From the IMG/VR virus record IMGVR_UViG_3300044797_000098, positions 342,471-406,470 of that record: a stretch of 64,000 nt of DNA. One strand, given 5' to 3'. The notes below the pieces were generated by a model that saw nothing but the letters and a program-made list of their open reading frames with translations, ran no database searches and was not told the DNA's origin. Made by a program: the position numbers and the translations under genes. Shown here one piece after another: positions 991-62,459 of this stretch. Within the stretch, counting starts at the first letter, position 1; every line of letters begins with the position of its first letter.

Positions 991-2583
991 CTATGGAAGT
1001 GGCAAGGGTTCGATTTTCATTTCGTTTCTTTTATCAACTACTTTTTTCAACTCTTCTTTTATTTCTTTTTCCATCAATGGGAAAACACTTTGCATCAATG
1101 GCACGAAGTTTCTTATACCGAAACGATGTCCTGCTTTTAGATACAACTCACCGTTTAGTTTTTTAATCAGTTCATTCTTTGACGAATGAATGGCTTTATT
1201 TCTATGATTGAAAAAACTATAATATACACGACGAATATAAGTATCAGAATTAGTAAATTGTGTCTTATCAACATTATCAATTATTTGTTTGGCAAGACTA
1301 CTACCGATAGCATTCAATGTATGATCATATGAATAGTATCTATTTTTATTTGGAAGAATAAGCAATTTCATTGCTGGCTTTATTGTTCTTGGAACTTTTT
1401 CTATATCTATTTTTTTAATAGCATCAACAAATGCTTTTGAAAAGATTTTTATGAACTTATTCTCTTTTTTCCTGCTATTTTTGTCGAATAAGACTGCTTG
1501 TTTGTCTTTTTTATTGCCAGATTGATTTTTAATTTTACAATCCTGATATGACTGAATCGATTCATATTCATCATACGGACGAGATTTACCTTCCCTGCTG
1601 GTGTCTTTTAGTTTCTTTCTAATTGGATTTAGTGGAAGATATGACTCTTGTAATAATTTGTAATCCATATTTTCAGCATAAAAAACATCGAACTTGTTAT
1701 TGGTTTTTGTTTCTATAAACTTTTTAAATTGAGCAATAACTTTATTATCGCCCGATGGATACATTCTGTCGATTAGAATATACGGTTTATGGTTTTTACC
1801 ATCAATAACGAACCTAACAACGCATCGCCGAACCATTTTACTACCATATTCATTAAACTTACCATTGGTCGTCATATAAATTATGCCAACGAATGGATCT
1901 ATGACTGAACCTATTGTGCAATACTTGTATTCTCCTCTATCCCAACTTTGGCAGGAAGATATACCACGCATTGACATAGTGCCAATATCCCAAGCACCTT
2001 CTGCACCATCGGATGAAAATACTATTTTGAACCCATTATTCGGAATGTTGTCCGTGCTAAATGCTTTAAACGAATAAGCGTTCTCCAACGGATCTAATCC
2101 AGCAACATTTGCCTCTTGAAGCATTTCGCTTAATTTATTATATACTCGGAATAGACTTTCATTCTTTCTGAAAACTGGTCTATTATCGCCTTCTATTGTT
2201 ATGTTGTCGGATAGTTTTAATGAAACTCGACCGTTATTAACTTGAATAATATCGTTGGATTTTTTTAATTGATTGAAAACTGCTTGAAGCAGGGTGGAAC
2301 AATTTTCTGTTTTTTCTTTATTGACTTTGTTTTTTATTGTCTTTTTATGCCTATTAAGTAATGTAATGCTGTATGATATTATAGCATTAATATCACCAAT
2401 CAAAATACCAGCAGATTGCTTTGCTTGATCTATATTATCTACATTCGCATCCTCAATACAATTAGGAAGTCCTATTGACGGAAAGACTTTTTTGATCGTC
2501 TTTACTTCCTTGAAAATGGGATGAGACGAAAACCATTTAGGATATTTTTTGTCTTTAAAGATTTCTTTTATTGGTGTTGCCAT
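991..2583 (-). CDS. Hypothetical protein (SMRGISSCQ family, copy 2)
   Basis: 530-aa ORF sharing the FSSDG-EG-WDI-TMSMRGISSCQ-W, DPF-GIIY, YGSKM-RRC and ID-MYP blocks. Confidence 0.9.
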   Translation of the reverse strand: MATPIKEIFKDKKYPKWFSSHPIFKEVKTIKKVFPSIGLPNCIEDANVDNIDQAKQSAGILIGDINAIISYSITLLNRHKKTIKNKVNKEKTENCSTLLQAVFNQLKKSNDIIQVNNGRVSLKLSDNITIEGDNRPVFRKNESLFRVYNKLSEMLQEANVAGLDPLENAYSFKAFSTDNIPNNGFKIVFSSDGAEGAWDIGTMSMRGISSCQSWDRGEYKYCTIGSVIDPFVGIIYMTTNGKFNEYGSKMVRRCVVRFVIDGKNHKPYILIDRMYPSGDNKVIAQFKKFIETKTNNKFDVFYAENMDYKLLQESYLPLNPIRKKLKDTSREGKSRPYDEYESIQSYQDCKIKNQSGNKKDKQAVLFDKNSRKKENKFIKIFSKAFVDAIKKIDIEKVPRTIKPAMKLLILPNKNRYYSYDHTLNAIGSSLAKQIIDNVDKTQFTNSDTYIRRVYYSFFNHRNKAIHSSKNELIKKLNGELYLKAGHRFGIRNFVPLMQSVFPLMEKEIKEELKKVVDKRNEMKIEPLPLP

Positions 2584-2590
2584 TATGATC

Positions 2591-3994
2591 TCATAGGTAT
2601 TTAGAATAGATTTTTGCGTATTTTGACTTCGGTGATTTCGGTTTCTTTGAAAGTTTTGCTAACTCTTTATTTATAATTGGAATTACTTTCTTTGATGCTT
2701 CTGATACGATTTTTTTTCTTATATTTTCAGTCTTTTTTGAAGGTGAAAAAAAACCATACCATACATCACTCATATGGTTGTTTATGGCTTTCTTTACATC
2801 TTCCACATCAGATTTAAATTCTGGTTTGGTTATATACCGCGGATTATCATTCCACAATCTTAAATCATCTAAAACATTAACATAATCGACATCTTTATTT
2901 TTTACATCTCTAATAACATTTTTATATTCTTCGGGAACATCTGCGAGTTTTAATTTTTTCACACACGATATAAAACTTTTTGCTACTGCATTATCAATTC
3001 GATCTGATATTTTTTCCAATTCTCTACCGGTCCTATCATCATAAGTTTCATCATCAGTTTCATCATCATAATCGATCTCATTATCGCGATATGATCTGCA
3101 ATCGTAATCTAAATTGCTAACTACTTCGCTTGTCGGTATAACAACATTGGAACGCAACCCATTTTTTAAATCGATTATATCGAACTTGTTTTTAGTTTTT
3201 TCTTTTAGAAAAGTAATGAACTCTTTCATTACGGCTTTATTATATTCAGGATACATAGTATCTATAACAATGCTTGGTTCTTTGCTTCGTTCTTTTACAA
3301 CGAACCTAACAATACATCGACGAAGCATCTTGCTACCATAATCTGTTTTTGTGCCAGAGGTTAGATATATAATACCAGTGAATGGATCGACAATTGATCC
3401 GACTAATTTACCACAATACTCCTTACCCCAGCCCTGACACGAAGATATACCACGCATTGACATCGTAGCAATATCCCATAGTCCTTCCATACCATCGGAA
3501 GAAAAACGAACTGTATGTTTAGCGTTTGGTATATTTATTGAACTGAATTGCTTAAAAGCACTAATGTTTTCTAACGCTGGAAGATATGATTGGTATTGTT
3601 TATGTAATTTATTATATACTTTGAATACACCCTCGCCTTGTTTGAACACAATTTTTTTATCTTTATCCGCAATAGGTTTTGTGAGATTGAGGGATATTTT
3701 ACCATCTTTTTTTACAACCGATTTAACAAGAGTATTAGATAGATTGCTTATCAATGTATAGTCTTGTTTATAAATAGGAATATAATTATGTAATGCACAA
3801 CTCATATTTTCAACTAAATTTAACGCAGTTTCCTTTATTTCTTCTGTGTTATCTATGCTTACAACTTTTTCACAATTAGGAAGTCCAATATCTGGGAAGA
3901 TTTTCCTTACAACTTTTACTGTTTTGAATATAGGATGTTGTCTTATGAAGACAGGAAAATCTTTTTTAGCGAATATCTGTTTTACTGTTGGCAT
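2591..3994 (-). CDS. Hypothetical protein (SMRGISSCQ family, copy 3)
   Basis: 467-aa ORF with the same conserved blocks. Confidence 0.9.
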   Translation of the reverse strand: MPTVKQIFAKKDFPVFIRQHPIFKTVKVVRKIFPDIGLPNCEKVVSIDNTEEIKETALNLVENMSCALHNYIPIYKQDYTLISNLSNTLVKSVVKKDGKISLNLTKPIADKDKKIVFKQGEGVFKVYNKLHKQYQSYLPALENISAFKQFSSINIPNAKHTVRFSSDGMEGLWDIATMSMRGISSCQGWGKEYCGKLVGSIVDPFTGIIYLTSGTKTDYGSKMLRRCIVRFVVKERSKEPSIVIDTMYPEYNKAVMKEFITFLKEKTKNKFDIIDLKNGLRSNVVIPTSEVVSNLDYDCRSYRDNEIDYDDETDDETYDDRTGRELEKISDRIDNAVAKSFISCVKKLKLADVPEEYKNVIRDVKNKDVDYVNVLDDLRLWNDNPRYITKPEFKSDVEDVKKAINNHMSDVWYGFFSPSKKTENIRKKIVSEASKKVIPIINKELAKLSKKPKSPKSKYAKIYSKYL

Positions 3995-4737: not shown

Positions 4738-5112
4738 TCATACCAGCGTTAAATACTTTGCTAAGTTTTCTTTGCCATATATTTTCTTGTTATCGAGAGC
4801 CTTTATATGTTTGCCATCGATATAGTATTCTGTTGTTTTGCCATGGTTTCTAATAATTGCCGGACCATCATCACGATGATTGACATATCCGGATGCCACA
4901 TATTTATTGTATGTTTTTATTCCATGAGAATACTCATTAGCATAACCATCTGGTGTTCTCCAACTTTTCGAGATACCATAACCATCTTTTCTATAAGATA
5001 TGAAAAAATTAGGTAATTTTATTTCTGAGTTAATTCCGAATCGATCGGCAAGTTTATATATTTGAAACTGCGTTTCTAATACTACATATTTTATATATTC
5101 AATAGCGATCAT
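4738..5112 (-). CDS. HR(E/D)DGPA-motif phage protein with conserved LDNKKIYGKENL-KYLTLV tail
   Basis: HRDDGPA motif; C-terminus nearly identical to 35423-35692 and similar to 42148-42414. Confidence 0.8.
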   Translation of the reverse strand: MIAIEYIKYVVLETQFQIYKLADRFGINSEIKLPNFFISYRKDGYGISKSWRTPDGYANEYSHGIKTYNKYVASGYVNHRDDGPAIIRNHGKTTEYYIDGKHIKALDNKKIYGKENLAKYLTLV

Positions 5113-5115
5113 AAA

Positions 5116-6105
5116 TCAATTCTCTTTACACACATTCACATAAAAAACATTACCATCAATTTCAATCTTTTTTGCATCCTTAGGATCATCATTATATGAC
5201 ATCAGTGCAATTTCATTCGCGAGCAGTTCTTTTTTCAACTTATCTTTATACTTTACGATGACATTAGCGGGTTTTGGCATACAAAAGATTTCGATATATA
5301 CTCGATCTGTCAATTCCAATTCGAGTTCTTTACGCACATTTTGCAATGCAGACTTAAAATCAGCAATAAATCCTCTTTCCAATAACTCATCGTTCAAGTT
5401 AGTATCAAGAATGATTACCCCTGATTTATTCGATGAGGAAGCATAACCCGCTTTTGATACGAACTCAACTTCAATATCTGCTAATGTTAGATCAATATCG
5501 CACATTCTAACTGCTTCTTTGTTTTCGAGCAGTTTATACAAGTCTTTACGATCAGCAAAACTCATCTTTGCCAGTTCAATTTTCAACGCATTACCTTGCT
5601 TGCCTCGTCCAGTTTTGCCAAGATTTCTAAAATTAGGCTTCAATACCATATCGGTGAATTGATTTGTGTCTTCGACGAATACAACTTTATCAACATTTAA
5701 TTCATCGCCAAGCACATTAGCGTAATCGTTGTTCTTGCAATCAACATACACCATATAATTTTGCACTTGTTTATCTGCGAATAACACATATGCTGTGCTC
5801 AATGGTTGTCGATTACGGATTTTAACTTCCGCACGAACCTTATGTCCCATCTCGCACATATCACGAATTGACCGCATACGATAGATTAGTTCGTAATCGA
5901 TATCACCAACTGGTGATTTATTTACACTAACGATAGCGAAGTTCGGATCGTTTTGATATTCCGCCTGATATTCTTTGATCAACTGATCTGATTTATCATC
6001 AATGGAATTGAACGAGGCGAATGCAGTCCATTGCTGAACAACACCTTCATCATTTGTGGAATTATAGCGAATTGTGTATTCACGCACGGTTTTTGTTTCC
6101 CTCAA
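5116..6105 (-). CDS. Stand-alone isoleucyl-tRNA synthetase (type 2) C-terminal region, no catalytic domain
   Basis: GHKVRAEVKIRNRQPL, ELNVDKV, LKPNFRNLGK and LDTNLNDELLERG..QNVRKELELELTDRV match the IleRS2 C-terminal (DUF5915-type) pattern. No HIGH or KMSKS motif. Confidence 0.8.
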   Translation of the reverse strand: MRETKTVREYTIRYNSTNDEGVVQQWTAFASFNSIDDKSDQLIKEYQAEYQNDPNFAIVSVNKSPVGDIDYELIYRMRSIRDMCEMGHKVRAEVKIRNRQPLSTAYVLFADKQVQNYMVYVDCKNNDYANVLGDELNVDKVVFVEDTNQFTDMVLKPNFRNLGKTGRGKQGNALKIELAKMSFADRKDLYKLLENKEAVRMCDIDLTLADIEVEFVSKAGYASSSNKSGVIILDTNLNDELLERGFIADFKSALQNVRKELELELTDRVYIEIFCMPKPANVIVKYKDKLKKELLANEIALMSYNDDPKDAKKIEIDGNVFYVNVCKEN

Positions 6106-7067: not shown

Positions 7068-7567
7068 GGGGCTTTTGACTTTTTGTCCTTATTAGAAACA
7101 ACTCTTGGCATTTCAACACCGAAGATAGTTCGATATATATTTGCCAAGCAAGTTTCCGAGCATGCAACTCTATTCGGTAAGTCCTGCGTTTCATATGCCT
7201 TGTTCATATTGCCAATGGGTTTTTGGCAACTACAACATTTGGCCATACTTTTGAATGTTGATTGTGCCCATCGTTCAAGTTTTTCGAGGTCTTTTTTATT
7301 ATGTGGACCGAAGTATGTTTTCGTTCCTTTACCGTCGTGATTGACAAGTGATATGAGTTTTCGTTCATCCCAATATGAATTATTCCACTCATCTAAAATA
7401 CGAATAGCAACATTTACTGCATCGATAGGACTTAATAGATTTTTTTGTTCCCCCAAAAACTTTGCAGGAAGTATGTCTTTACCAGCATATTTTTTACCAC
7501 CACAAGATATTTCAACAACTAATTGATTATCTTCGTAATATCGTTGGCGACTCGTAAAAAAAGACAA
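7064..7567 (-). CDS. Hypothetical protein with C-terminal Cys cluster
   Basis: Likely TTG start at 7567 after GGAGGTG; CCSC..CSETC motif. Confidence 0.7.
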   Translation of the reverse strand: MSFFTSRQRYYEDNQLVVEISCGGKKYAGKDILPAKFLGEQKNLLSPIDAVNVAIRILDEWNNSYWDERKLISLVNHDGKGTKTYFGPHNKKDLEKLERWAQSTFKSMAKCCSCQKPIGNMNKAYETQDLPNRVACSETCLANIYRTIFGVEMPRVVSNKDKKSKAP

Positions 7568-7636
7568 AATACACCTCCAAAAAATTATCTTTGTCGATAT
7601 ATACATATAACCACATATGAATATATGGAGACAAAA

Positions 7637-8479
7637 ATGACAAGAAAACAAAGATCGGATACGATTATTTTAGACAAAAACCAATTACAAAATGACTATA
7701 ATGAATTAAAAAGTGTAAGGAAGGTTGGTAAAAAATACGGTATTTCTCGTGAAACGGTAAGAAAATATATACATTTATATAATCTTAATTATATTAAACC
7801 AATTAAATATAATTGTAATGAAAATTTTTTCAATGAAGAAACTGAATCTGCATATTATTTTGCTGGATTTTTAGCAGCCGATGGCTGCCTATTTAAGAAA
7901 AAAGGAGAAAGTTATGAAGTCAAACTCACACTGAAAGACACCGACAAAGATATTTTATTTAAATTTAAACAATCAATTAATTCTGATGCACCAGTAATTG
8001 AGACGAAAAGATTGTGTAGAGTTTTTACTAGATATTTCAATATAACAACAGCGCAATTTAGAATTGCATCTAAAATTGTGTTCAATAATCTAAAACAAAA
8101 GTTTCAATTAACTCCTCGTAAATCATTAACTCTTAAATTTCCGATAAAACTAAAAAACAACGAGTTAATTAGACATTTCATTCGTGGTTATTTCGATGGT
8201 GATGGGTCGATTTATATCAATCATACAGATAAAAAAAGTGGTATAAAACATATGCGAATTAGTATTGTAGGAACAAAACATATGTTGGAAAACATTAGAT
8301 ATGTATTAATGCGTGAATGCATAATAAAAAAGGGAACAATTATAAAAATTAATAATATTTATGAACTTCGATATGGCGGTAATAATATTGTGTATGCTAT
8401 ATATAAATATTTATATAAAGATGCTACATTATTTCTTGAACGAAAAAAACTTAAATTTGAATATATCTCACCAAGATAG
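7637..8479 (+). CDS. Free-standing LAGLIDADG homing endonuclease with N-terminal HTH
   Basis: Two motifs, YYFAGFLAADG and HFIRGYFDGDGSI; very AT-rich; opposite strand to neighbours; GGAG RBS before ATG 7637. Confidence 0.9.
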   Translation: MTRKQRSDTIILDKNQLQNDYNELKSVRKVGKKYGISRETVRKYIHLYNLNYIKPIKYNCNENFFNEETESAYYFAGFLAADGCLFKKKGESYEVKLTLKDTDKDILFKFKQSINSDAPVIETKRLCRVFTRYFNITTAQFRIASKIVFNNLKQKFQLTPRKSLTLKFPIKLKNNELIRHFIRGYFDGDGSIYINHTDKKSGIKHMRISIVGTKHMLENIRYVLMRECIIKKGTIIKINNIYELRYGGNNIVYAIYKYLYKDATLFLERKKLKFEYISPR

Positions 8480-15879: not shown

Positions 15880-16581
15880 TTATGGTTTCGTGCTAACCTT
15901 TTTGATTGGTTTCATTTTCTTTGTTGGGGTTGGAACTGGATTTGCTGGCATTGGAACTGGAACTGTTTTTGTTCCACTGCCACCAATATATTGTCCTGAT
16001 CCTGCTGGCGGTGTAGCAGAAATACTTTGCGTTGGTTTAGTTGTTTTCAATGTTTTCAGTTGATTTACCGCATTCTTCATCTTCTCTTCGAGCGTTTTCT
16101 TTGCTTCCTTTTTCACTGTTGGCTTGGAAGATAGATCAATTTTCTTCGGTGTATAACCGATGCTCTTATACATATCTTCTCTTGGGAACCTATAATACTT
16201 TACGTTATCTTGTTCTGCGTTTTCTGGTTGTGATATATTATCACGCACCCGAATGATTGCGTTTCCATTCTTTACATCTTTACCAATTAGCCACACTGCT
16301 TTTTGCAGCACATAATCTTTGCCCGGTGCGCTGTGATCGAATGTGCTTGGCATATCCCACATAGCATCAATCTCTGCGAGGACAATAAAAACATCCGTTG
16401 GATCAAGTGATTTAGCAATGTTTTCCATATCGGTTAAATTTAAATCACCAGCACCAATTCGCTCGCCCGCACCATTATACCAGCCAGCATTTTTTATTAT
16501 GCTGTTCCAGCGCATTTGGTTATTAGATAGACCGAATGCTTTGCATTTGAGATCGCCGAACATTGATTTTGTGAGTTTCAT
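15880..16581 (-). CDS. Hypothetical protein with Pro/Lys-rich tail
   Basis: 233-aa ORF overlapping the gltX stop. Confidence 0.75.
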   Translation of the reverse strand: MKLTKSMFGDLKCKAFGLSNNQMRWNSIIKNAGWYNGAGERIGAGDLNLTDMENIAKSLDPTDVFIVLAEIDAMWDMPSTFDHSAPGKDYVLQKAVWLIGKDVKNGNAIIRVRDNISQPENAEQDNVKYYRFPREDMYKSIGYTPKKIDLSSKPTVKKEAKKTLEEKMKNAVNQLKTLKTTKPTQSISATPPAGSGQYIGGSGTKTVPVPMPANPVPTPTKKMKPIKKVSTKP

Positions 16582-18005
16582 AGTTGTGCCTTTATTCTAT
16601 TCAATACTGTTTCTTTTCCGAGCACGCCCATTACTTGGAATAGTTCAGGGCTTTGAGTTCGGCCGTATAGTGCCACACGAGTGCTTTGTCCAACATCGCG
16701 GATTGTTAGATTGTTTTGTGTTAGCCAATCATTCGTTGCTGTCCGAAGATTGGTTTCCGTCCAATCATTTACGGATTGTAGGAATGTATTGAATGCGGAT
16801 AGTTTCGTTTTGGCTTCCGGTGTTAGTATTTTTTCTACTGCGGATTGGTCAATGGAGATGTCGGAACGGAGAACTGGCTCTAACTCTACGCTGGCTTCCC
16901 GAAAATTTTTTGAACGCGTTCTGACGAGATTAGTTAGGGAAGCAAGACGATCGCGGGAAACATCAAGCCCCAATTCTGCAACGAACGGATGTAAGTGTTT
17001 TGCATACACATCGTCAGGCGTAAGCGTCGATGACTTTAAGTGTTCATAGTTAATGACACTGAATTTCTTGAAATCATATTTGCCGTCATTACGACCCACT
17101 GCTTCTAATGAAAACTTTTCGATCAGTTCATCAATGCTAAATACCTCTTGGGACTTCCATCCCCATCCAAACCTTACAAGATAATTTAAAACTGCATTTG
17201 GAGTAAAACCTAATTGCCTAAATTCAGCAACGCTTACTGCACCATCGCGTTTCGAGAGCTTCCCGCCATTGCTATTTAATAATAATGGCAGATGACAATA
17301 TGTCGCACGATCAATTCCTAATGCCTCGTATAACATCAGTTGGCTGGGTAGATTTTTTAAATGGTCAGATCCCCTGATAATATGCGTTATATGATCTATA
17401 ACGCCGTCATCTATGGCGTTTGCGAAGTTGAAGAGAGGGATACCATTTTGTCTAAAAATTACGAAGTCAAAATTTTCCTTGTTTGGAATTGCTCGCTTAC
17501 CAAACGCTATATCATTAAATTCGATTACACCATCTGTTGGAGCTTTGAAACGAACAACATAATCTTTGCTTAATTGTTTCGTTATATTTCTACAAGTTCC
17601 GGGATACTTCCAAGGATTTTTAGGATTTTTCGCAAGCGCTTCTTCGCGTTGCTTATTTAGATCTTCCTCGGAACAATAGCATAAATAAGCTTTACCGCTT
17701 GCTATTAGTTCTTCTGCATACTTCTTGTATATTGGAAGGCGTTCCATTTGTGTATAAACACCAGCAGGCTTATTATTCGTTCCATAACCCATCGTTGGGA
17801 TTAGTCCGAGCCATTTAAGATCTTCAAGTATTTTATCTGCGCCACCTTCAACAACACGAGCCTGATCGGTATCTTCTATTCTTAATAGGAATTCGGCATT
17901 ATATTTTTTGCTGAATAACCAATTGAACAAAAAACTTTTTGCATTTCCGCAATGTAAGGTGCCACTGGGCGACGGAGCACATCTAACACGAAGATTATTT
18001 GACAT
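16578..18005 (-). CDS. gltX: Glutamyl-tRNA synthetase
   Basis: RVRCAPSPSGTLHCGN (HIGH region), LRIEDTDQAR, YLCYCS, ITHIIRGSDHL, KLSKRDG (KMSKS), and C-terminal RVALYG..SPELF anticodon domain. Confidence 0.97.
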   Translation of the reverse strand: MSNNLRVRCAPSPSGTLHCGNAKSFLFNWLFSKKYNAEFLLRIEDTDQARVVEGGADKILEDLKWLGLIPTMGYGTNNKPAGVYTQMERLPIYKKYAEELIASGKAYLCYCSEEDLNKQREEALAKNPKNPWKYPGTCRNITKQLSKDYVVRFKAPTDGVIEFNDIAFGKRAIPNKENFDFVIFRQNGIPLFNFANAIDDGVIDHITHIIRGSDHLKNLPSQLMLYEALGIDRATYCHLPLLLNSNGGKLSKRDGAVSVAEFRQLGFTPNAVLNYLVRFGWGWKSQEVFSIDELIEKFSLEAVGRNDGKYDFKKFSVINYEHLKSSTLTPDDVYAKHLHPFVAELGLDVSRDRLASLTNLVRTRSKNFREASVELEPVLRSDISIDQSAVEKILTPEAKTKLSAFNTFLQSVNDWTETNLRTATNDWLTQNNLTIRDVGQSTRVALYGRTQSPELFQVMGVLGKETVLNRIKAQL

Positions 18006-18265: not shown

Positions 18266-19075
18266 ATGAGCCATTATGTATATATATTGCAAAATAAAAT
18301 TAACTTGAAGATTTATGTCGGATATTCCGCAAATCCAAAAATAAGATGGAATAGTCATAAAAACACCGCGAATAACCCAAAACATAAAAATCATCACGAA
18401 CTAATATATAATGCAATACGCAAACACGGTTGGGAAAATTTTGACAAACAAATTATTGAAGAATGGGAAACTAAAAAAGAAGCGCTAGAAGCAGAGATGT
18501 TTTGGATAGAATTTTTTCGAACCAATATTCATATTTATGGAAAAGAATATGGGTATAATCTTGGCCCAGGTGGAACTGGCGGTCGCGTAAAAGGTGGAAA
18601 ACTTTCTATTGAACATAGGCGCAAATTAAGTGAAGCGCATAAAGGAAGAACCGCGTGGAATAAAGGGAAACCGTCCCCACTAAAAGGTCGAAAAAGAACA
18701 ACACCGCTTACTGAAAATGAAAAACAAAACCTTGCAAGACTTGCTGATTTTCATAGAGGTAGAAAACATTCACCAGAACGAATAGAAAAATCAAGACAAT
18801 CACGCTTAGGAAAGAAAACAAAACCACATACGGAAGAACATAAGCGCAAAATAAGTGAGGCTCAAAAAGGAAAAAAGAAACCAAAACACATATTTTCAGA
18901 AATAATTGAAAAACAAATTGTTCAAGAATATAAATCTGGTAAATCTATAAATAAATTAAAAATTGAATATAAATGTAGTTGGACTGCAATCAAATCAATA
19001 TTACTTATGTATATAGCGGAAAACGATATAAGAAAAGATGATGGTAAAAAAACGAGAAAAATTATTCGAAAATAA
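18266..19075 (+). CDS. GIY-YIG homing endonuclease with NUMOD3-like repeats
   Basis: YVYILQN...KIYVGYS..RW.SH; GYN...GG; repeated H..EH.RK.SEA.KG. Confidence 0.9.
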   Translation: MSHYVYILQNKINLKIYVGYSANPKIRWNSHKNTANNPKHKNHHELIYNAIRKHGWENFDKQIIEEWETKKEALEAEMFWIEFFRTNIHIYGKEYGYNLGPGGTGGRVKGGKLSIEHRRKLSEAHKGRTAWNKGKPSPLKGRKRTTPLTENEKQNLARLADFHRGRKHSPERIEKSRQSRLGKKTKPHTEEHKRKISEAQKGKKKPKHIFSEIIEKQIVQEYKSGKSINKLKIEYKCSWTAIKSILLMYIAENDIRKDDGKKTRKIIRK

Positions 19076-30327: not shown

Positions 30328-30360
30328 GTCCAGTCAAAAAACTCAATGATATCAAGGCAG

Positions 30361-30433
30361 TCGGCGTGGTAGGGGTCGAACCTACTAATCGAAGAATATA
30401 AGTCTTCTGTCTTAACCGTTTGACGACACGCCG
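30361..30433 (-). tRNA. trnI: tRNA-Ile (anticodon UAU), CCA not encoded
   Basis: CGGCGTG/CACGCCG acceptor stem, D-loop GG, GAAGA-CTTATAT-TCTTC anticodon arm, GTAGG-TTCGACC-CCTAC T arm, A73. Confidence 0.9.
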
Positions 30434-31271: not shown

Positions 31272-31928
31272 TCAACAACACCGGTAGTCTTTGCCAATTT
31301 CGCTCGTTGCTTCTTGGCACCTACCCCCGTCCCAAGTTTTGCGTCGAGCAGAGCAATCTTCTGCGAAGCGGAAAGGGCAAAGGCTCATGCACGCCATACC
31401 AACTTTTTCACTGATAGACATAGCAATCGCTTTCATAACTTGGCCACCATCTAACATACCTAATGGAAAGCAATTAAACAAGTTTAACATTGCCATCCAT
31501 CCCGCAGCAGCAGCAAGCATTGGTAATCCAGTAATTAGATATGCAACATATGTTCCAATCGCTAATACCAATCCTCCAATTGGACCAGCCAATGCAATGA
31601 ACGCATTGTCAGCATATGTTTTGTATTTGTCTTCTGCGATTGCTGCCCCTCCAAGGAAAGGAATAAAATAAAATCCTTTCGTTCGAAAGCCCTTATGCTT
31701 CATAGCAACAACGTGAGAACTCTCGTGAAAACCCAACGCAATAATAATGAGCAACGCAAACTTCCAAGTAAAAAGATATGCATACGAAGCAAAACTAATT
31801 GCAAGCAATCCTACTTTGATCAGTTTCGTCATCTTCAATAACTTAGGAAGATATGTTAGAAACTTTGCTCCGAACTTTCCAAACAATCCCCAACCAGTCT
31901 TAGATTTCTTTTCAGTCATGTCAATCAC
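31272..31928 (-). CDS. M50 (site-2) membrane metallopeptidase, C-terminally truncated or fused
   Basis: HESSH, IALAGP, NLFNCFPLGMLDGG; the last ~35 aa appear to be an out-of-frame read of another gene. Confidence 0.85.
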   Translation of the reverse strand: MIDMTEKKSKTGWGLFGKFGAKFLTYLPKLLKMTKLIKVGLLAISFASYAYLFTWKFALLIIIALGFHESSHVVAMKHKGFRTKGFYFIPFLGGAAIAEDKYKTYADNAFIALAGPIGGLVLAIGTYVAYLITGLPMLAAAAGWMAMLNLFNCFPLGMLDGGQVMKAIAMSISEKVGMACMSLCPFRFAEDCSARRKTWDGGRCQEATSEIGKDYRCC

Positions 31929-33018
31929 CCCAACCGTGATATCCCTCTAATCCGTGATATCTTTCCATAGCATGACTAATGGTCCCAGTATGGGATGTTT
32001 TCAATTTTTCTGCTAACTTCTTGTTGCTTGCTGTCTGCACTGACTCAATACTACCATCTTTTGGATCGTATGTGATATGCAATTCTTCTTTGAAAAGTTT
32101 TCGGAATAGCCTGTATGCTACCTTTGGCGAGACTTTGAAAAACAAAATTGCTCGCTTTATCTCTGTCATTAATTCATTTTGATAGCAGATACGATCTGGA
32201 ATACAATCGTCCGTATCGTATGATGAATGCTGGCCTCTGCGAGACAATTTACAACTCAATGTGTAATAATCTTCGAGACTATCATAGACCGTATGAATAG
32301 ACAATCGCTCCCAATCTTTGGATACATACGATGTATATCCGGTTCCATAATACGAACTATTACTAACTGAAACAAGTTCATCTGTCCAGAATACTAATGT
32401 AAAATCTGAATACCTTCCAGACTTTGATGCACTGCTAATTGCAGCAGCACGATTTAGATTTCTGAACTTATATTTCTCGATTGATTGAATAACCGGTTTA
32501 GACTTTGTCGAACTTGAATTCGACATCAATGATGACCAAGTCGTTTGAGTTTCGGTTTTTGTTTCGGTTTGAGTTGTTGTATAGTCAGATACTCTAACGA
32601 TAGCAGTTGAGGACGCTTCCGTTGCAGATGAAACGACTTTTCTTTCTGCGTTAAAAACATGCATCTTTATATGCTGGTCGAGGTAATTTTTATGGATTTG
32701 ATTTCTGCATATATTACATTGCGACCAATCTGTTGATTTACTACTTAGTGGTGTGGTATTATTAATCATTTGATTTGGTGTTTCTTTTTTGGAATTATGT
32801 TTTCCAACATTAGGATTACCGTCGTCATCGAGACGATCAGAATTAACATCTACATAGTCAATAGGTTCCCCAACGCGTTCCCCAATCCGAAGGACATTTC
32901 CAACATACGGATTTCTCGGATGATAGTTGTGGTTTCCACCATGGATTGCATCACGATCATGGTATCTTTGGTGTTGGCAAACGACTGCGCCACACAATGA
33001 ACACACTATCCCTGACAT
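31921..33018 (-). CDS. Hypothetical protein with C2H2-like motif and Ser/Thr-rich linker
   Basis: C..C........L..H...H at residues ~101-120. Confidence 0.75.
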   Translation of the reverse strand: MSGIVCSLCGAVVCQHQRYHDRDAIHGGNHNYHPRNPYVGNVLRIGERVGEPIDYVDVNSDRLDDDGNPNVGKHNSKKETPNQMINNTTPLSSKSTDWSQCNICRNQIHKNYLDQHIKMHVFNAERKVVSSATEASSTAIVRVSDYTTTQTETKTETQTTWSSLMSNSSSTKSKPVIQSIEKYKFRNLNRAAAISSASKSGRYSDFTLVFWTDELVSVSNSSYYGTGYTSYVSKDWERLSIHTVYDSLEDYYTLSCKLSRRGQHSSYDTDDCIPDRICYQNELMTEIKRAILFFKVSPKVAYRLFRKLFKEELHITYDPKDGSIESVQTASNKKLAEKLKTSHTGTISHAMERYHGLEGYHGWGD

Positions 33019-33260
33019 CTATGCTAATCCTTTTAGCAGTTTAGCAAGCGCTCTTTGTTGGGCTTTGCGTTCGCGCTTTCGTTGTTTCTTGGATTTTGGA
33101 ACAACGGAATTACCACCGCAAGATGGACAACGCCCGTCGAGATATACTTGGTTCTTCTTCTTGTCTGGATCAATGACTTTGGATGTGCATAGACGGCACA
33201 CTAATGTGTAGTTATAGTCAATGATCTTAATTAGTTGTGGTTCCATTTTGTTATGCTTGG

Positions 33261-33289
33261 AATATAGCCATTGATGGCATCGCTGTCAA
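33261..33289 (-). promoter_or_regulatory. sigma70-type promoter
   Basis: TTGACA-17nt-TATATT. Confidence 0.85.
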
Positions 33290-33293
33290 TGTA

Positions 33294-33337
33294 GTTGCTT
33301 TGAACCCTGTGTGGCTGCTTGGAGCCCTGTGTGGTTG
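33294..33337. repeat. Imperfect 20-nt tandem repeat, two copies
   Basis: gttgctttgaaccctgtgtg / gctgcttggagccctgtgtg. Confidence 0.7.
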
Positions 33338-33353
33338 GATGTGCGCTAAAAAC

Positions 33354-33514
33354 TAAGAAAGGCGCAAAACCTTGGCAGCGTTTTCCGACCTAATGTCCTA
33401 TATAAGTTGCCTCATTAAAGTCCTCAATGCAATTTTTGAGGTTGCATATCAATGGAGAATGAGGAAGTATATTTGGACGATCGGAGACGGTGCTTAAGTG
33501 AGCGCCTTTGCTTA
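33354..33514. ncRNA. Candidate ~160-nt irregular rod-shaped RNA, strand uncertain
   Basis: Nested inverted repeats AAAGGCGC/GCGCCTTT, TCCGA/TCGGA, GTCC/GGAC, CCTCATT/AATGAGG, TGCAA/TTGCA, directly downstream of the tRNA-like trio. Confidence 0.6.
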
Positions 33515-33522
33515 TTTTGAAT

Positions 33523-33597
33523 TGGTGACCTCTATCTGGTATAAGCAGATATTCTTTTGAGCGAACTCAAAATGTCCTTAACTTAGACGAAGAGGCC
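33523..33597 (-). ncRNA. tRNA-Glu-like RNA 3 (non-canonical; UUCG tetraloop; CCA encoded)
   Basis: GGCCTCT TC GTCT AAGTTAA GGAC A TTTTGAG TTCG CTCAAAA GAAT ATCTG CTTATAC CAGAT AGAGGTC A CCA. Confidence 0.85.
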
Positions 33598-33610
33598 GTA
33601 ATGAAAAACT

Positions 33611-33686
33611 TGGTGACGGTAGGAGGGCTCGAGTCTCCATTGCCAATGCCGAAGCGCTGGTGTCCTACTAATTAGACGATACCGCC
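33611..33686 (-). ncRNA. tRNA-Glu-like RNA 2 (non-canonical; UUCG tetraloop; CCA encoded)
   Basis: GGCGGTA TC GTCT AATTAGTA GGAC A CCAGCGC TTCG GCATTGG CAAT GGAGA CTCGAGC CCTCC TACCGTC A CCA. Confidence 0.85.
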
Positions 33687-33702
33687 ATACGTAAAAACTT
33701 CG

Positions 33703-33775
33703 TGACCGGAGAGGGGCTCGAGTCCTCATCGATGTTTCCTAAGAAACATTATCCTACTAATTAGACGATCCGGCC
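33703..33775 (-). ncRNA. tRNA-Glu-like RNA 1 (non-canonical; UUAG tetraloop; CCA not encoded)
   Basis: GGCCGGA TC GTCT AATTAGTA GGAT A ATGTTTC TTAG GAAACAT CGAT GAGGA CTCGAGC CCCTC TCCGGTC A. Confidence 0.85.
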
Positions 33776-33814
33776 GTCTTTTGATCATTCACTTTCGCGT
33801 CCGACCATATCTAC

Positions 33815-33843
33815 AACTTAACCACTACCGCGCTGGCTGTCAA
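33815..33843 (-). promoter_or_regulatory. sigma70-type promoter of the tRNA-like operon
   Basis: TTGACA-17nt-TAAGTT. Confidence 0.8.
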
Positions 33844-50340: not shown

Positions 50341-51450
50341 CTAGGCTAACCGTTGTTCCGTATGGTTTTCGTTTCCCGCCTTTTGCAACAATTTTACTAG
50401 ATTGTCAATCTGCATTTCCGCAAAATACTGCCGAAAACTATGAACTTTTTTTGCTCTCAATGAAAACAATGCACCTGAACATTTTGACTTCACTGCCAAT
50501 AATGCGAACGCTTTTTGTTCGGGAATGTCTTTGATGAGATCGTATTCTGCTTCGAGCGTTGCGATTAGATTGTCCAATCGCTTTTGTGCTTCATCAAACG
50601 CTGGTTTATATTCTGGGAATGCGTTCAATACTTCTGGCATTTCACCCTGACGAATAATCTCGACGATTGACTTATTGGACATCAATCCATCTTTGGCGTG
50701 ATGCAGTAATACATACTTTGGGTGCTTGATTTTTACCCTATTGAACGATCCATCGAGGACGACATATCCTTCTTGCTCCAACGGATCCATTTTATCGAAT
50801 GATGCAATGCAAGCATCGAAACTGTTCAACGGAAACTCTTTTACGATTGGACAAGGGATATATGCTTGTGCTTCTTGTGCTGTTAGTTCTTGCAATGTGA
50901 TTAGATTGCGTGCCCCAAGTAATGTTAGTTTTGGTTCTGTATATCGAACTACAACCCTGTTGTAAGGACTAACAAGTTCGAAAAAGAAACACATTCCACA
51001 ATTTGGATCTGGTAATTGATACTTGAATGTATCCCAGAATAATTGCTTGAATGTGATGCCGAAGTCATTGATTGGTGTATTGGCGTCCGGTGTTCCAGTT
51101 GTTGCAACATTCCATTCACCATAAATTGGCGCAATCGTAATTAAACTTCCATCTACTTTCTCTTGGACGCGAGCGGTATTCCAATCTATCGTTGCAGCAT
51201 TTGGTTCGCCGAGATTAAAAAACTTCGTGAAAGCAAGCGACACAACATTCCAATCATTACTTTCATCCAAAATTATACCACGACACTCACGAACAATTCG
51301 CTCGGAAAAATCACTCTCTATTTGATTATACTTGAACAAAACGAGATTGTTATATACTGAATGACGCTTTGCATCAATAGCATACTTATCCGACAACTCA
51401 TCGAATGAATAGCCAGATCGAAGGAAGTTTTGGATTACGAGGTTAGGCAT
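50341..51450 (-). CDS. T4 Rnl1-type RNA ligase
   Basis: RECRGIIL, FTKFFN.GE, EKVDGSLI (motif I), FELVSPYNRVV, EGYVV, RVKIK. Confidence 0.92.
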   Translation of the reverse strand: MPNLVIQNFLRSGYSFDELSDKYAIDAKRHSVYNNLVLFKYNQIESDFSERIVRECRGIILDESNDWNVVSLAFTKFFNLGEPNAATIDWNTARVQEKVDGSLITIAPIYGEWNVATTGTPDANTPINDFGITFKQLFWDTFKYQLPDPNCGMCFFFELVSPYNRVVVRYTEPKLTLLGARNLITLQELTAQEAQAYIPCPIVKEFPLNSFDACIASFDKMDPLEQEGYVVLDGSFNRVKIKHPKYVLLHHAKDGLMSNKSIVEIIRQGEMPEVLNAFPEYKPAFDEAQKRLDNLIATLEAEYDLIKDIPEQKAFALLAVKSKCSGALFSLRAKKVHSFRQYFAEMQIDNLVKLLQKAGNENHTEQRLA

Positions 51451-52785: not shown

Positions 52786-53379
52786 TTATTGCGAGTTAGT
52801 TTTGACAATCAGATTTTGCTTGTCTCGAATTGCAATTAGTTCATCAATGTGAATTAGTCTATAACCCCAAGCATCAACACCACAATCAATACGACGAACT
52901 TTTACCTTATCTTCGGGCTTCGAATGCTCATGTCCGTTAAGCAACCATCCGCCTTTATCAACTGGACGATATTGCGCAAACTTTACACCATGTGCTCCTG
53001 CCTCACTACCAAGATATGGAAGATGATTTACCGTGAAACCAAACCAATTTTGCAATTCTTGATAGACACCAGCAAACCCATATTGTAGATACCGCTGCTT
53101 GGCTGCTTCGCTCTTCTTACCATGCACTGGATGCGCGCGATCGTGATTTCCTAATACAAGGAATTGCTTGGCTCTTATGCGAGGAAGAATTGCAGGAACC
53201 GTTTTTTCATTCATCGAAAAATCGCCAAAACACCAAACCTCATCACCATCACGAATGACCGAATTAAAACGATCAATCATCACATCCTGCATTTCTTTGA
53301 TGTCCTTAAAGGGACGATCGCAAAAACGCAAAATATTGTGATGATCCCAGTGAGGATCGCTATAAACCCATGTATTCAT
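52786..53379 (-). CDS. Calcineurin-like metallophosphoesterase
   Basis: SDPH.DH, GD, GNHD, H.P, GHEH, CGVD. Confidence 0.9.
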   Translation of the reverse strand: MNTWVYSDPHWDHHNILRFCDRPFKDIKEMQDVMIDRFNSVIRDGDEVWCFGDFSMNEKTVPAILPRIRAKQFLVLGNHDRAHPVHGKKSEAAKQRYLQYGFAGVYQELQNWFGFTVNHLPYLGSEAGAHGVKFAQYRPVDKGGWLLNGHEHSKPEDKVKVRRIDCGVDAWGYRLIHIDELIAIRDKQNLIVKTNSQ

Positions 53380-59994: not shown

Positions 59995-61374
59995 TTACAC
60001 TATCGCTCTTTTACGAATGTTTTCGAGAGTATCATCCACCAATAACTCTCCGTTCTCATATACGGTTCGCATTACTGATAACGGACATTGAATATCATTA
60101 TCAGTCAATCTAATTGTTTCAAGTTTTCCATTACGATTAATTAGATCAAGACGACCTGCTTTGCTTCGTTTTCCATGATCTGTAATTGGATCTTTGAAAA
60201 CATCAACTTGCTTGCCATCAACAATAGCGCTACTACATTTCATAGCGAACTTATTGGTATCACGGTTATGTTGCTGCAATAACGCACCACCCATACCGAA
60301 TGCAACATTAGATGCGCTATAACCATTAGCGAGCAACTTTTCAAGAATGATAGCAATCATTCCTTCATTAATACCATCACCCTGAATAATACGAACATGA
60401 TTCAACACACGATATCCTTTTGTATTGATTGTATGTCCAAAAGATTCATCGAGTAATTGCGCTGTTTTCAAAACAACATCGGGAGGATGACCGGAGTCTG
60501 GACGAATAATAACCGTTGCTCCGCTATCAATAACTTCGCCTTTCAACTCGCTACCCCAATACTTACTGATAGCATTCCATAAATCATAACTATCACTAAC
60601 CACCGCTACAAGAGCACCGGGCTTCGCGAACTGTTTTAGCATATTACGATATGCATCACACTCTCTATCTCTACCCCAACTTGTAATTGATGAATGTTCT
60701 GCTGCCGAGATAGAGAATGCTGACATATCTATATGATAGAAATCATTAGCACATAAAACACCTACATCTGTATCACTTCCCATGAAGTTAACCAAGTGTG
60801 ATGCTCCACCAATCATTGCTGATTCTTGACTGGATACACCCCGACTCCCAAAATCATGTAGTTTGAATGGTAATTCTGCTTCTGTATTATCTGCTGATTT
60901 ATCGAGAGCAGCCTTGATTAGTTTCTTGATTCTCCAACTGATTGTCGCAACATTGGTCGGATACCACACGCGAAGCAACGAGGTCTCAATCCAAGAATAA
61001 ATCCAAGGAACTTTCGTATCTGTTAATTCAACTGTAATCAGTGCATTGTGCGATGGAACAACTGTTCCTTCTGGAACCGCACGAATGCGAACTGGAATCT
61101 TACCACCAAGATCTTTGGCGATATACATCCATCCATCGTAATTGAATACTCCCATATGAGCCTTGAAAAACTTATTGGCTCGCTCGACTTCATCAACTGT
61201 GATACGATGAGTTAGGTATTCTTTGAGATAGTATTGCAATCCGAAGAATACTGTTTCTGGATGCTCACCTCCACGTGATTCAACATAACCGAATAGGCTT
61301 GTTGTATTAGGAGGATATTGTAAATAGTGGCTTGATTTATAACTGTCTGTGTCGAATATAATGCTGTATTTCAT
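59995..61374 (-). CDS. nadV: Nicotinamide phosphoribosyltransferase
   Basis: TDSYKSSHYLQYP, LHDFGSRG, AAEHS, VVSDSYD, IRPDSG, IIQGDG, FGMGGALLQ. Confidence 0.97.
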   Translation of the reverse strand: MKYSIIFDTDSYKSSHYLQYPPNTTSLFGYVESRGGEHPETVFFGLQYYLKEYLTHRITVDEVERANKFFKAHMGVFNYDGWMYIAKDLGGKIPVRIRAVPEGTVVPSHNALITVELTDTKVPWIYSWIETSLLRVWYPTNVATISWRIKKLIKAALDKSADNTEAELPFKLHDFGSRGVSSQESAMIGGASHLVNFMGSDTDVGVLCANDFYHIDMSAFSISAAEHSSITSWGRDRECDAYRNMLKQFAKPGALVAVVSDSYDLWNAISKYWGSELKGEVIDSGATVIIRPDSGHPPDVVLKTAQLLDESFGHTINTKGYRVLNHVRIIQGDGINEGMIAIILEKLLANGYSASNVAFGMGGALLQQHNRDTNKFAMKCSSAIVDGKQVDVFKDPITDHGKRSKAGRLDLINRNGKLETIRLTDNDIQCPLSVMRTVYENGELLVDDTLENIRKRAIV

Positions 61375-61420
61375 TTGACTCTCCGTCTTTGTTTAATTCA
61401 ACGAACCCTCACTGGGATCG
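61372..61420 (-). promoter_or_regulatory. nadV leader motif (two hairpins)
   Basis: CGATCCC-AGTGA-GGGTTCG..GAC-GGAGA-GTC-AA-ATG. Confidence 0.6.
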
Positions 61421-61433
61421 CTTACTGTTTGTT

Positions 61434-62459
61434 TCAGTTGCCATCATCGTTATTGATGAAGTTGTAAATTATATGCCAATGATCCTCAAAAAACTCTGAA
61501 CTCCTCGTATAATACTCTGCAAGAGGAAGCCAAAAGGCTTTGTCTGCGTCGGAATCACCCTTCACAAGATTCAGGGCACCAATTCCAAGATTCAATTTGA
61601 ACGCCTGAGTAATTGTTCTTCCTCTAAGTGAGCGACGAGGATGATCGAATGTTTTTTCCCCTTTAATAGCAGCGAACAATGTTCGCTTATCGAGATCGAT
61701 GCTTGTTTCTTCTTTTAGTTCTCTAATTGCTGCTTCCCTGAGAGTTTCATTCTGTTCAACGAATCCACCCGGAAGAGCAAGCAATCCTTTACCATACTTA
61801 GCACGACGTCTAACAAGTAAAATATGACCTGATTTAATTACTACTGTATCGACTGTTTGGAAGGTAGGCGGAAACGGGGCTCCCTCCCATGCCGACTTAT
61901 ATTCATTCAATTCATCAAAACTATCTTTGAGATATGAAAACTTCTTGGAACGTTTAAACTCTTCCAACCAACGAGCAACGTTCTCTGGAACGTATTGTCG
62001 ATACGAAACATCATGAGTAAAATACAATTCACGAATACCAGTGGCATGTAGTTTATGTTGCGTCTTATAGTTAATGAACTCCCAATCAGGGAATGAATCA
62101 AGGTAATAAGAAGTGATATCTGACTTATGTCCAACGAGAGCAACATGCTTAGAACGATCTGTGATATCGAGAACTTTTTGTTGAATCTCAATTAGCCAAG
62201 TGTTCTCATTGTATAGATAGTCTCGAATAGGAAGAACTATAATCCTATCTTTTTGTTCTGGGGTTAGAACTGACTCAATAATATCGTGTCGCTCTCTCGA
62301 CGAGAACGGATCACGAGGATCGGATGCTTTATCATGCGAACCAACAATAAGAATTACCTTATCACCAATGGATAGGGCAAGATTAAGAAGTTCCATGTGA
62401 GCATTATGGAATGGCTGAAAACGCCCAATAACAATCGCATATTCGTAATCTAATTTCAT
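61434..62459 (-). CDS. natV: Bifunctional NMN adenylyltransferase / Nudix hydrolase (NadM-Nudix)
   Basis: IGRFQPFHNAH; Nudix box GGFVEQNETLREAAIRELKEET; RGRTIT; FEDH. Confidence 0.95.
   Translation of the reverse strand: MKLDYEYAIVIGRFQPFHNAHMELLNLALSIGDKVILIVGSHDKASDPRDPFSSRERHDIIESVLTPEQKDRIIVLPIRDYLYNENTWLIEIQQKVLDITDRSKHVALVGHKSDITSYYLDSFPDWEFINYKTQHKLHATGIRELYFTHDVSYRQYVPENVARWLEEFKRSKKFSYLKDSFDELNEYKSAWEGAPFPPTFQTVDTVVIKSGHILLVRRRAKYGKGLLALPGGFVEQNETLREAAIRELKEETSIDLDKRTLFAAIKGEKTFDHPRRSLRGRTITQAFKLNLGIGALNLVKGDSDADKAFWLPLAEYYTRSSEFFEDHWHIIYNFINNDDGN

Follow-up and report, generated by a model that had tools for sequence, protein, structure and literature searches.

Sealed-arm relatives of tRNA-Glu in arrays of a metagenomic phage lineage that also encodes a glutamyl-tRNA synthetase

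Non-decoding transfer RNAs (tRNAs) and tRNA mimics are already known, and they are the closest described counterparts of the locus analyzed here, in which three tRNA-sized RNAs (RNAs A, B and C), each with an anticodon arm that appears to be closed into a continuous stem, lie in tandem on a viral contig. The array was read in a 64,000-nucleotide (nt) stretch of DNA (hereafter the window), positions 342,471 to 406,470 of IMG/VR record IMGVR_UViG_3300044797_000098; the window is part of a 406-kb contig, has about 37% G+C and carries nearly all of its genes on the minus strand. All sequences considered, in the window and in related phages, are metagenomic. The three RNAs resemble glutamate tRNA (tRNA-Glu), and we refer to them and to their relatives as sealed-arm RNAs.

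Staphylococcal non-proteinogenic tRNA-Gly species reportedly serve as glycyl donors for Fem peptidyltransferases, still have a normal anticodon loop and are kept out of translation by weak binding to EF-Tu. The sealed-arm RNAs resemble them in being extra, non-translating copies, several per genome, that keep the acceptor end and that in the window have lost the D-loop GG and the canonical T-loop; in contrast, they have no anticodon loop altogether, and the window yielded no consumer of the Fem type. The mascRNA of MALAT1 and the viral tRNA-like units of MHV68 are also cloverleaves without a proper anticodon loop, presumably matured by tRNA enzymes, and mascRNA acts via GlnRS without decoding (PMC9976931). 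These RNAs, however, are eukaryotic or belong to eukaryotic viruses and do not derive from a single tRNA whose identity set they keep, whereas the sealed-arm RNAs combine a tRNA-Glu identity with an encoded CCA, occur as multi-copy arrays and belong to phages. Phage tRNAs active against defences that cleave tRNA, namely T5 tRNA-Tyr against retron Eco7/PtuAB, tRNA-Lys against PARIS and variants of the anticodon loop (PMC11555353, PMC12409363), likewise occur in variable clusters beside homing endonucleases, and their altered anticodon region removes the nuclease target. They decode and replace the cleaved host tRNA, whereas the sealed-arm RNAs should be unable to decode, which leaves a decoy or an off-ribosome role only. 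Mimicry of the acceptor and T-arm without an anticodon is also seen in the tRNA-like domain of tmRNA and in YrlA (PMC4201824), but these are larger and have other domains (an mRNA-like region, a Ro-binding helix), whereas the sealed-arm RNAs are complete tRNA-sized cloverleaves; Rfam found neither tmRNA nor YrlA in the window. Type III antitoxin (ToxI-like) RNA arrays consist of identical short repeats in tandem beside the gene of the endoribonuclease toxin that processes them; the sealed-arm units are instead diverged cloverleaves of tRNA size, and the window array has no toxin-like gene next to it.

With canonical bacterial and phage tRNA-Glu(UUC), the sealed-arm RNAs share the cloverleaf, the GGCC../..GGUC-A-CCA end, U8-C9, the GUCU/GGAC D-stem, U13.G22, the NAAU variable loop and the letters UUCG at positions 34-37. 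They differ in having an 18-nt anticodon arm of 7 base pairs (bp) plus a tetraloop, without U33, in place of 5 bp and a 7-nt loop, and in the often mismatched pair 53-61, and in the window copies neither the GG of the D-loop nor the T-psi-C loop is present. Nothing comparable came up in literature searches that covered tRNA-like RNAs, decoys, and tRNAs of non-proteinogenic or anticodon-less kind, and we know of no identifiable tRNA whose anticodon loop is zipped shut and which is kept in diverged copies across a virus lineage.

On the minus strand, RNA A (76 nt, 33775..33700), RNA B (76 nt, 33686..33611) and RNA C (75 nt, 33597..33523) are separated by spacers of 13 nt (GUUUUUACGUAU after RNA A, AGUUUUUCAUUAC after RNA B) and score 92.5, 94.3 and 86.1 bits, respectively, against a covariance model of the three. 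All have a 7-bp acceptor stem with G1-C72, G2.U71 and A73, followed by U8-C9, a D-stem GUCU/GGAY with a D-loop of 7-8 nt lacking GG, A26, and a variable loop of 4 nt (CGAU, CAAU and GAAU); U11-A24, U13.G22 with A46 and a missing residue 47 are common to the three copies. The 18-nt anticodon arm folds as 7 bp plus a tetraloop, reading AUGUUUC-UUAG-GAAACAU in RNA A, CCAGCGC-UUCG-GCAUUGG in RNA B, with one C.A mismatch and a closed C(UUCG)G, and UUUUGAG-UUCG-CUCAAAA in RNA C. The 3' end is A-CGA in RNA A and A-CCA in RNAs B and C. RNAs A and B have the T-loop CUCGAGC and an A53.C61 mismatch, and RNA C has the T-loop CUUAUAC, which recurs in copy R1 of the related locus L056. The minimum-energy structure given by RNAfold was the cloverleaf for RNAs A and B, and the structural details of a preliminary description of the three cloverleaves were all borne out by direct reading, parse and RNAfold. 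A kissing dimer through the palindromic T-loop (CUCGAG) was considered and rejected, the palindrome being absent from other members, and complementarity between D-loop and T-loop, judged by eye, showed no consistent pattern.

Standard tools passed over these genes. ARAGORN left RNAs A-C uncalled and made a single call in the window, a tRNA-Ile(UAU) at 30360-30433, which is also conserved in the relatives; Rfam 15, which saw this tRNA-Ile(UAU), gave noise and no family for RNAs A-C in the window even at E ≤ 10, and blastn of the array region against INPHARED phages gave no match. Among the relatives described below, ARAGORN called none as an ordinary tRNA, and some were labeled 'tRNA-???' with a 2-base anticodon. 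Pseudo or undetermined calls had been anticipated, and this is what three members of locus L068 received, whereas ARAGORN was silent on the window copies. A practical warning is that standard tRNA finders overlook sealed-arm genes or label them 'undetermined'.

A degenerate pattern of the D-arm plus 'TTMG' pulled about 50 IMG/VR loci, which were used as a comparator set, and most of those checked with ARAGORN were ordinary phage tRNA-Glu(UUC) genes with G37. These have the UC-GUCU...GGAC-A D-arm and the NAAU variable loop in common with the window RNAs, and several also share the GGCC../..GGUC-A acceptor end. Their anticodon loop reads Y-U-U-U-C-G-A, and the tetraloop UUCG of the window RNAs aligns with its U34-U35-C36-G37. 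True tRNA-Glu genes scored 40-60 bits against the covariance model of RNAs A-C, and the canonical comparators have a 17-nt arm, the D-loop GG and UUCGA or UUCAA T-loops. The covariance-model scores, the shared D-arm, the 4-nt variable loop and the acceptor end support the proposed derivation from tRNA-Glu, and we infer that the window RNAs are tRNA-Glu derivatives in which one inserted nucleotide and substitutions at positions 32, 33 and 38 turned the anticodon loop into two extra base pairs. The earlier term 'anticodon-less' is apt in that no ordinary anticodon loop can be presented, but it is imprecise, the tetraloop being the old U34-U35-C36-G37. Two further tRNA-Glu-like genes, carried by other phages and uncalled by ARAGORN (L054 932-1006 (+) and L033 52-126 (-)) were without the D-loop GG and had odd T-loops; the anticodon loop in L054 reads CAUUAGU, and the arm in L033 is irregular.

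Relatives were reached via homologs of a 365-aa protein encoded downstream of the array (31921..33018, minus strand), which served as a synteny marker. Searches gave 34 metagenomic homologs at 34-62% identity, one of them the window's own; nine loci were fetched, and the same kind of RNA array was present at every fetched locus with enough upstream DNA. Parsing of the marker-protein loci yielded 28 distinct members, and eight further members were reached from homologs of the phage glutamyl-tRNA synthetase (GluRS), seven in L206 (428 kb) and one at the very edge of L207 (353 kb). Altogether 36 sealed-arm RNAs were found in 10 related phage contigs, in which the neighbouring protein is 36-58% identical. 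The sealed arm was present in all 36, in the L206 and L207 members as a 16-nt arm of a 6-bp stem plus UUCG, and nearly all of the 36 keep G1-C72, G2.U71, A73 and the 4-nt variable loop. The model from the three window copies found relatives in other phages at E-values of 1e-8 to 1e-21, and a filter-free search recovered all members spotted by eye. One member (L067 2936-3039 (+)) has a 36-nt D-loop and is otherwise intact.

Searches by short sequence reached less far. An exact 17-mer of the D-arm matched nothing in IMG/VR besides the source contig and a single unrelated tRNA-Gly. With the pattern GTCTAA..GGAC-N7-CTTCGG, viral matches numbered 16, none of them a family member except the source contig, and in genomes no member among the 120 matches listed, about 1,700 chance matches being expected. 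A structural scan of 1.47 Mb of unrelated loci returned a handful of non-repeat matches and no member of the tRNA-Glu family. One of these matches, in an unrelated phage tRNA cluster (L051 3826-3903 (+)), is a sealed-arm tRNA-like gene (7 bp plus GGAU) whose variable loop measures 5 nt and whose T-loop is canonical; ARAGORN labels it 'tRNA-???' with a 2-base anticodon; hence sealed-arm tRNA-likes may exist for other tRNA types too.

Among the 28 parsed members, G1-C72, G2.U71, A73 and the 4-nt variable loop without residue 47 were each present in all 28. Paired cells numbered 196/196 in the acceptor stem, 112/112 in the D-stem, 124/140 in the T-stem and 188/196 in the sealed arm, where each position showed four to six pair types. 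Arm pairs 6 and 7, which occupy former loop positions, were standard pairs in every member; position 33 was C, G or U and paired, and no member had a 7-nt loop with U33. The tetraloop was UUCG in 20 members, CUCG in four, UUAG in three and CUUG in one, with a C-G closing pair in 22 of the 28; the letters UUC thus occur in 20 members, but locked in the tetraloop. Compared with a 5-bp stem whose 8-nt loop stays open, the sealed arm gained 2.5-8.7 kcal/mol in stability (mean 5.2). Encoded 3' ends were CCA (17), CGA (5) and CUA (3), with C74/A76 in nearly all. More variable were the D-loop GG (8/28), the pair 53-61 (non-standard in 14/28), U13.G22 (24/28) and U11-A24 (15/28). In 39 distinct sequences, 97.6% of pair cells were standard, compared to 57.9% with partners shuffled and at most 48% with partners slid, and 21 of 23 pairs changed on both sides; this alignment leans towards structure because it was fitted to the model, and an independent parse gave the same picture. 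The ortholog of RNA B in L062 and L063 shows compensatory stem changes and keeps a mismatch at the same stem position.

The claim of selection on structure is thereby strengthened, as 21 of the 23 pairs covary and compensatory pairs extend across diverged phages. The argument from parallel loss in three copies, on the other hand, does not hold, the sealed arm being an inherited family trait, and neither does the loss of the D-loop GG and T-psi-C as a shared hallmark, since one or both are kept in several relatives' members. Because members in L068, L066, L065 and L063 keep the D-loop GG and/or UUCGA-type T-loops, the loss of these elbow nucleotides in the window copies is secondary. As judged from the alignments, what stays constant in the family is the sealed arm together with the signature of the acceptor end, U13.G22 and the lack of residue 47. 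The preliminary description had also named U11-A24, U13.G22 with A46 and the lack of a residue 47 as GluRS identity elements; the missing residue 47 (28/28) and U13.G22 (24/28) fit this in the family, but U11-A24 (15/28) does not. Homologs with ordinary 7-nt UUC loops, which would have pointed to decay, were not found among the relatives, and decay is not supported. We infer that the sealed-arm RNAs are a conserved, previously undescribed class of non-decoding tRNA.

The array stands behind its own promoter, as had been proposed: direct reading gave TTGACA (33843..33838), a 17-nt spacer and TAAGTT (33820..33815) on the minus strand, and five lineages have TTGACA-N17-TAnnnT ahead of the array, with TTGACA-N17-TAGATT/TAGAAT/TATAAT upstream in L056, L062, L063, L065 and L067. 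A generic promoter scan of the window did not report it, because the -10 hexamer fits only 3 of 6 positions. The 31-nt 5' leader (33776..33806 (-)) contains GTCGGACGCGAAAGTGAATGA (33805..33785) and runs straight into G1 of RNA A. This 21-mer is 100% identical in L056/L057 (exact-match scan) and in L062 and L063 (direct reading), although the neighbouring proteins of those phages are just 52-58% identical, and it may be a protein-binding or processing site; an exact search with it found no phages beyond the two already known. The array would be co-transcribed in the window with a conserved trailer of about 180-190 nt (33335..33522 (-)), whose sequence is conserved in L056 (5528-5700), L062 (3512-3695) and L063 (1405-1590) and in which a GGUCGGA motif resembling the leader sequence recurs. 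In the consensus fold of the four trailer sequences the 5' and 3' ends pair, with compensatory changes at seven pairs, and Rfam gave no match to the trailer. In L062, two open reading frames (ORFs) lie between array and trailer and the trailer has its own TTGACA promoter, hence the trailer may be an independent structured small RNA gene. Promoter, leader and trailer are near-identical between phages with proteins about 55% identical.

The window also encodes a GluRS of 475 aa (16578..18005 (-); Pfam tRNA-synt_1c 1.3e-80, Anticodon_2 9.9e-25), which can be aligned over its full length to bacterial GluRS of solved structure and has HCGN and KLSKR motifs. It looks like an ordinary full-length enzyme with an anticodon-binding domain, and thus gives no sign of specialization for an RNA without an anticodon loop; in an alignment to E. 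coli GluRS read by eye, rather than to the T. thermophilus structure, it apparently keeps the arginine that binds C36. The RNAs and the GluRS had been described as one operon. The GluRS gene lies on the same strand as the array but 15.5 kb downstream with more than 25 ORFs between, and therefore they are not one operon; what stands is that a phage GluRS co-occurs with the array across this clade of huge phages. GluRS homologs at 48-61% identity were found on contigs equal in length to those of the marker gene (160591, 91690, 163630, 31995 and 33837 bp), the distance from array to GluRS is about 15 kb in three phages, and both loci read starting from GluRS alone (L206 and L207) carry sealed-arm RNAs within 10 kb. 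The order of further genes (PLP enzyme, 5'-3' exonuclease, M50 peptidase) is also common to all these contigs, hence the co-occurrence is not phylogenetically independent. A single-sequence GluRS search in IMG/VR returned the source contig only, and a literature search on GluRS in jumbo phages found no paper. In L206, about 5 kb upstream of the phage GluRS, a canonical tRNA-Gln(UUG) (5044-5117 (+)) stands amid the seven sealed-arm RNAs.

Two genes follow the array in a constant order. The first after the array is always that of a 75-aa protein (33019..33246 (-)) that has CxxC...CxxC motifs as well as a basic tail and which in the window has its own promoter (33289..33261, scan 11/12); the same gene order is seen in L056 and L062-L068, and adjacency would link this protein to the RNAs. 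The second encodes the 365-aa marker protein, with N-terminal Cys/His zinc-finger-like motifs and a folded C-terminal domain. It has no Pfam or PHROG family and a weak C2H2 zinc-finger match among PDB sequences, and its AF2 model (pLDDT 66, C-terminal domain confidently folded) gave no PDB fold match at E ≤ 0.001. About 12.6 kb downstream of GluRS lie tandem paralogs of about 520 aa (530 aa, 991-2583 (-); 467 aa, 2591-3994 (-)), of which L206 (15119-21376) and L207 (16355-20331) have three or four copies a few kb downstream of GluRS. Neither window protein has a Pfam, PHROG or PDB sequence match, and the fold matches of an AF2 model were uniformly GNAT and weak (PDB E 0.03-0.4). Aminoacyl-tRNA transferases of the Fem, L/F and MprF types have a GNAT fold, as do aminoacyl-tRNA-acetylating toxins, and the GNAT-like proteins are a weak lead as candidate consumer of glutamate-charged RNAs. 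Domains of LanB, HemA, Fem, MprF, cyclodipeptide synthase (CDPS) or L/F-transferase type were not found among window ORFs of at least 150 aa on the gene-carrying strand. Elsewhere the window carries an NAD salvage pair (NAMPT and an NMN adenylyltransferase-Nudix fusion, 59995-62459 (-)) and a stand-alone 329-aa protein with DUF5915, the C-terminal domain of IleRS-type synthetases (5116-6105 (-)), kept as a separate gene in the relative L204 (19791-20762); no full IleRS was seen in the window. Sigma-70-type promoters and a phage OmpA-domain protein hint at a Gram-negative host.

Read together, the sequences indicate that the RNAs are functional, non-decoding descendants of tRNA-Glu. What they do is a separate matter, for which we tentatively rank first a private off-ribosome pool of glutamate-charged acceptor ends serving some consumer enzyme, a reading that is possible and still short of probable. 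RNase P and 3' processing with CCA addition would cut the transcript into tRNA-sized RNAs, which the co-inherited phage GluRS would bind and probably glutamylate, since the features kept are those that GluRS reads outside the anticodon. The sealed arm would exclude the RNAs from decoding and from anticodon-loop nucleases, and the charged pool would be used off the ribosome by a consumer, for which the tandem GNAT-like proteins are the weak lead. Retention of core and acceptor elements with loss of those of the anticodon loop fits recognition by GluRS or another tRNA-Glu-specific protein. Some GluRS enzymes select chiefly for an augmented D-stem and the lack of residue 47, and A. ferrooxidans GluRS1 charges only tRNAs with these two features (PMC9976931). 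The further proposal that the phage GluRS loads glutamate on the sealed RNAs and that phage enzymes, perhaps the GNAT-like proteins, pass it to a phage or host target is doubtful.

Several points weigh against a glutamyl-acceptor role. The strong determinants of E. coli GluRS are the anticodon bases U34, U35, C36 and A37 (PMC9976931), which a C(UUCG)G tetraloop cannot present, and the phage GluRS, with its normal anticodon-binding domain and apparently the C36 arginine, looks like an enzyme suited to ordinary tRNA-Glu. U11-A24 is replaced in 13 of the 28 members and CCA is not encoded in 11 of them. No recognized aminoacyl-tRNA-dependent transferase was found among the window ORFs covered by the domain search, and the GNAT matches are weak. 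Co-occurrence with GluRS may be mere shared ancestry, given the wider gene order in common, and the fast turnover and diversification of cassettes described next would fit an arms race better than a metabolic function.

Standing close to the glutamyl-acceptor reading, and ranked after it as possible and rather unlikely, is a decoy or sponge for immunity directed at tRNA-Glu. The RNAs would mimic the acceptor end and core of the tRNA and soak up or inhibit a host effector, such as a CCA-modifying toxin, a nuclease of the acceptor stem or variable loop, or an aminoacyl-tRNA-acetylating enzyme; the sealed arm would prevent them from harming translation and from being cut in the anticodon loop, and the phage GluRS would keep real tRNA-Glu charged and hence protected. 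Arrays of one to at least seven copies with their own early-type host promoter suit such a role. L056 and L058 have identical flanks and differ in one cassette (R3 to R5), and L062 and L063, of which L062 has two ORFs inserted after the array, differ in tetraloop and T-loop, the same RNA having UUCG in L058 and L063 and UUAG in L062. Copies within one genome are strongly diverged, with a mean identity of 38% in the arm strand. Homing endonuclease genes on the opposite strand adjoin the loci: in the window a GIY-YIG gene (18266-19075 (+)) beside GluRS and a LAGLIDADG gene (7523-8479 (+)) near the DUF5915 gene, and in L064 a LAGLIDADG gene (1564-2457 (-)) directly after the RNA array. T4 Rnl1 repairs cleaved tRNA, and the window carries an Rnl1-type RNA ligase (50341-51450 (-)) and a metallophosphatase (52786-53379 (-)) that would be consistent with an ability to repair tRNA. 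The acceptor stem is invariant at its top, where FaRel2-type toxins are reported to choose their tRNAs (PMC11559606); tRNA-directed defences, and phage tRNAs countering them, are by now recognized as common (PMC11555353, PMC12409363, PMC13096335).

On the other side, our literature search gave no report of a bacterial defence effector with specificity for tRNA-Glu at its acceptor end or core, stoichiometric decoys are poorly suited to catalytic toxins unless binding is tight, a sealed arm would not be bound by nucleases that recognize the anticodon loop, and a decoy does not require the constant association with GluRS. Cassette turnover, copy diversity, the early-type promoter and the tRNA-repair-type genes thus favour a decoy, whereas association with GluRS and retention of CCA speak for the glutamyl acceptor, which we keep in first place.

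A third and distinctly less likely explanation takes mascRNA as its model and makes the RNAs non-substrate ligands that stabilize, activate or inhibit GluRS or glutamyl-tRNA reductase. Such a ligand would account for the co-occurrence with GluRS and for core and acceptor features of GluRS type kept alongside lost anticodon determinants; mascRNA, which has no anticodon loop and is not aminoacylated, raises the stability of GlnRS (PMC9976931). However, CCA in most copies and C74/A76 in nearly all suggest a working 3' end, many diverged copies would be superfluous for a regulatory ligand, and no glutamyl-tRNA reductase was found in the window.

Less credible again is that the units are mere processing punctuation, that is RNase P/RNase Z signals freeing or stabilizing the leader, the trailer or small mRNAs. 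Analogues are the tRNA punctuation of mitochondria and the tRNA-like units of MHV68, and the proposal would explain why sequence conservation is higher in leader and trailer than in the tRNA-like units and why the units in L206 alternate with small ORFs. A tRNA-Glu acceptor end, the missing residue 47, encoded CCA and a capped arm of fixed length (18 nt; 16 nt in L206/L207) would, however, be superfluous for such signals, the L062 trailer stands apart from the array with its own promoter, and tandem units with spacers that in the family measure 1-14 nt release nothing.

Two last possibilities are very improbable. Decaying tRNA-Glu pseudogenes without function would explain the silence of standard detectors and the elbow nucleotides lost in the window copies, but not a non-canonical arm kept with compensatory changes where the marker protein is 36-58% identical, the 97.6% of standard pair cells with 21 of 23 pairs covarying, or a conserved promoter. 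Unusual decoders, be they quadruplet or +1 frameshift readers with an 8-nt loop or, in RNA A, a UUA suppressor, would explain an arm one nucleotide over the normal length with UUC or UUA exactly at 34-36; against them, the two would-be loop-closing positions are complementary and covary in 28/28 with C(UUCG)G the most frequent form, the energy difference in favour of the sealed arm is 2.5-8.7 kcal/mol, CUUG and CUCG loops occur, the 6-bp stem plus tetraloop of L206 leaves no space for an 8-nt loop, the window ORFs read through normally with code 11, and the third tetraloop base varies in the same RNA between strains (UUCG or UUAG), which argues against a codon-reading role.

What is new among the non-decoding tRNAs and tRNA mimics is thus a sealed anticodon loop conserved across a lineage. 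The 36 natural variants offer a test set for what GluRS and other readers of tRNA-Glu need apart from the anticodon. If the transfer of glutamate from the sealed RNAs by phage enzymes is true, it would be the first virus-encoded tRNA-dependent pathway of non-ribosomal aminoacyl transfer with a dedicated non-decoding carrier, and any of the candidate functions, whether off-ribosome glutamate carrier, anti-immunity decoy or synthetase ligand, would widen the roles known for the tRNA body in infection.

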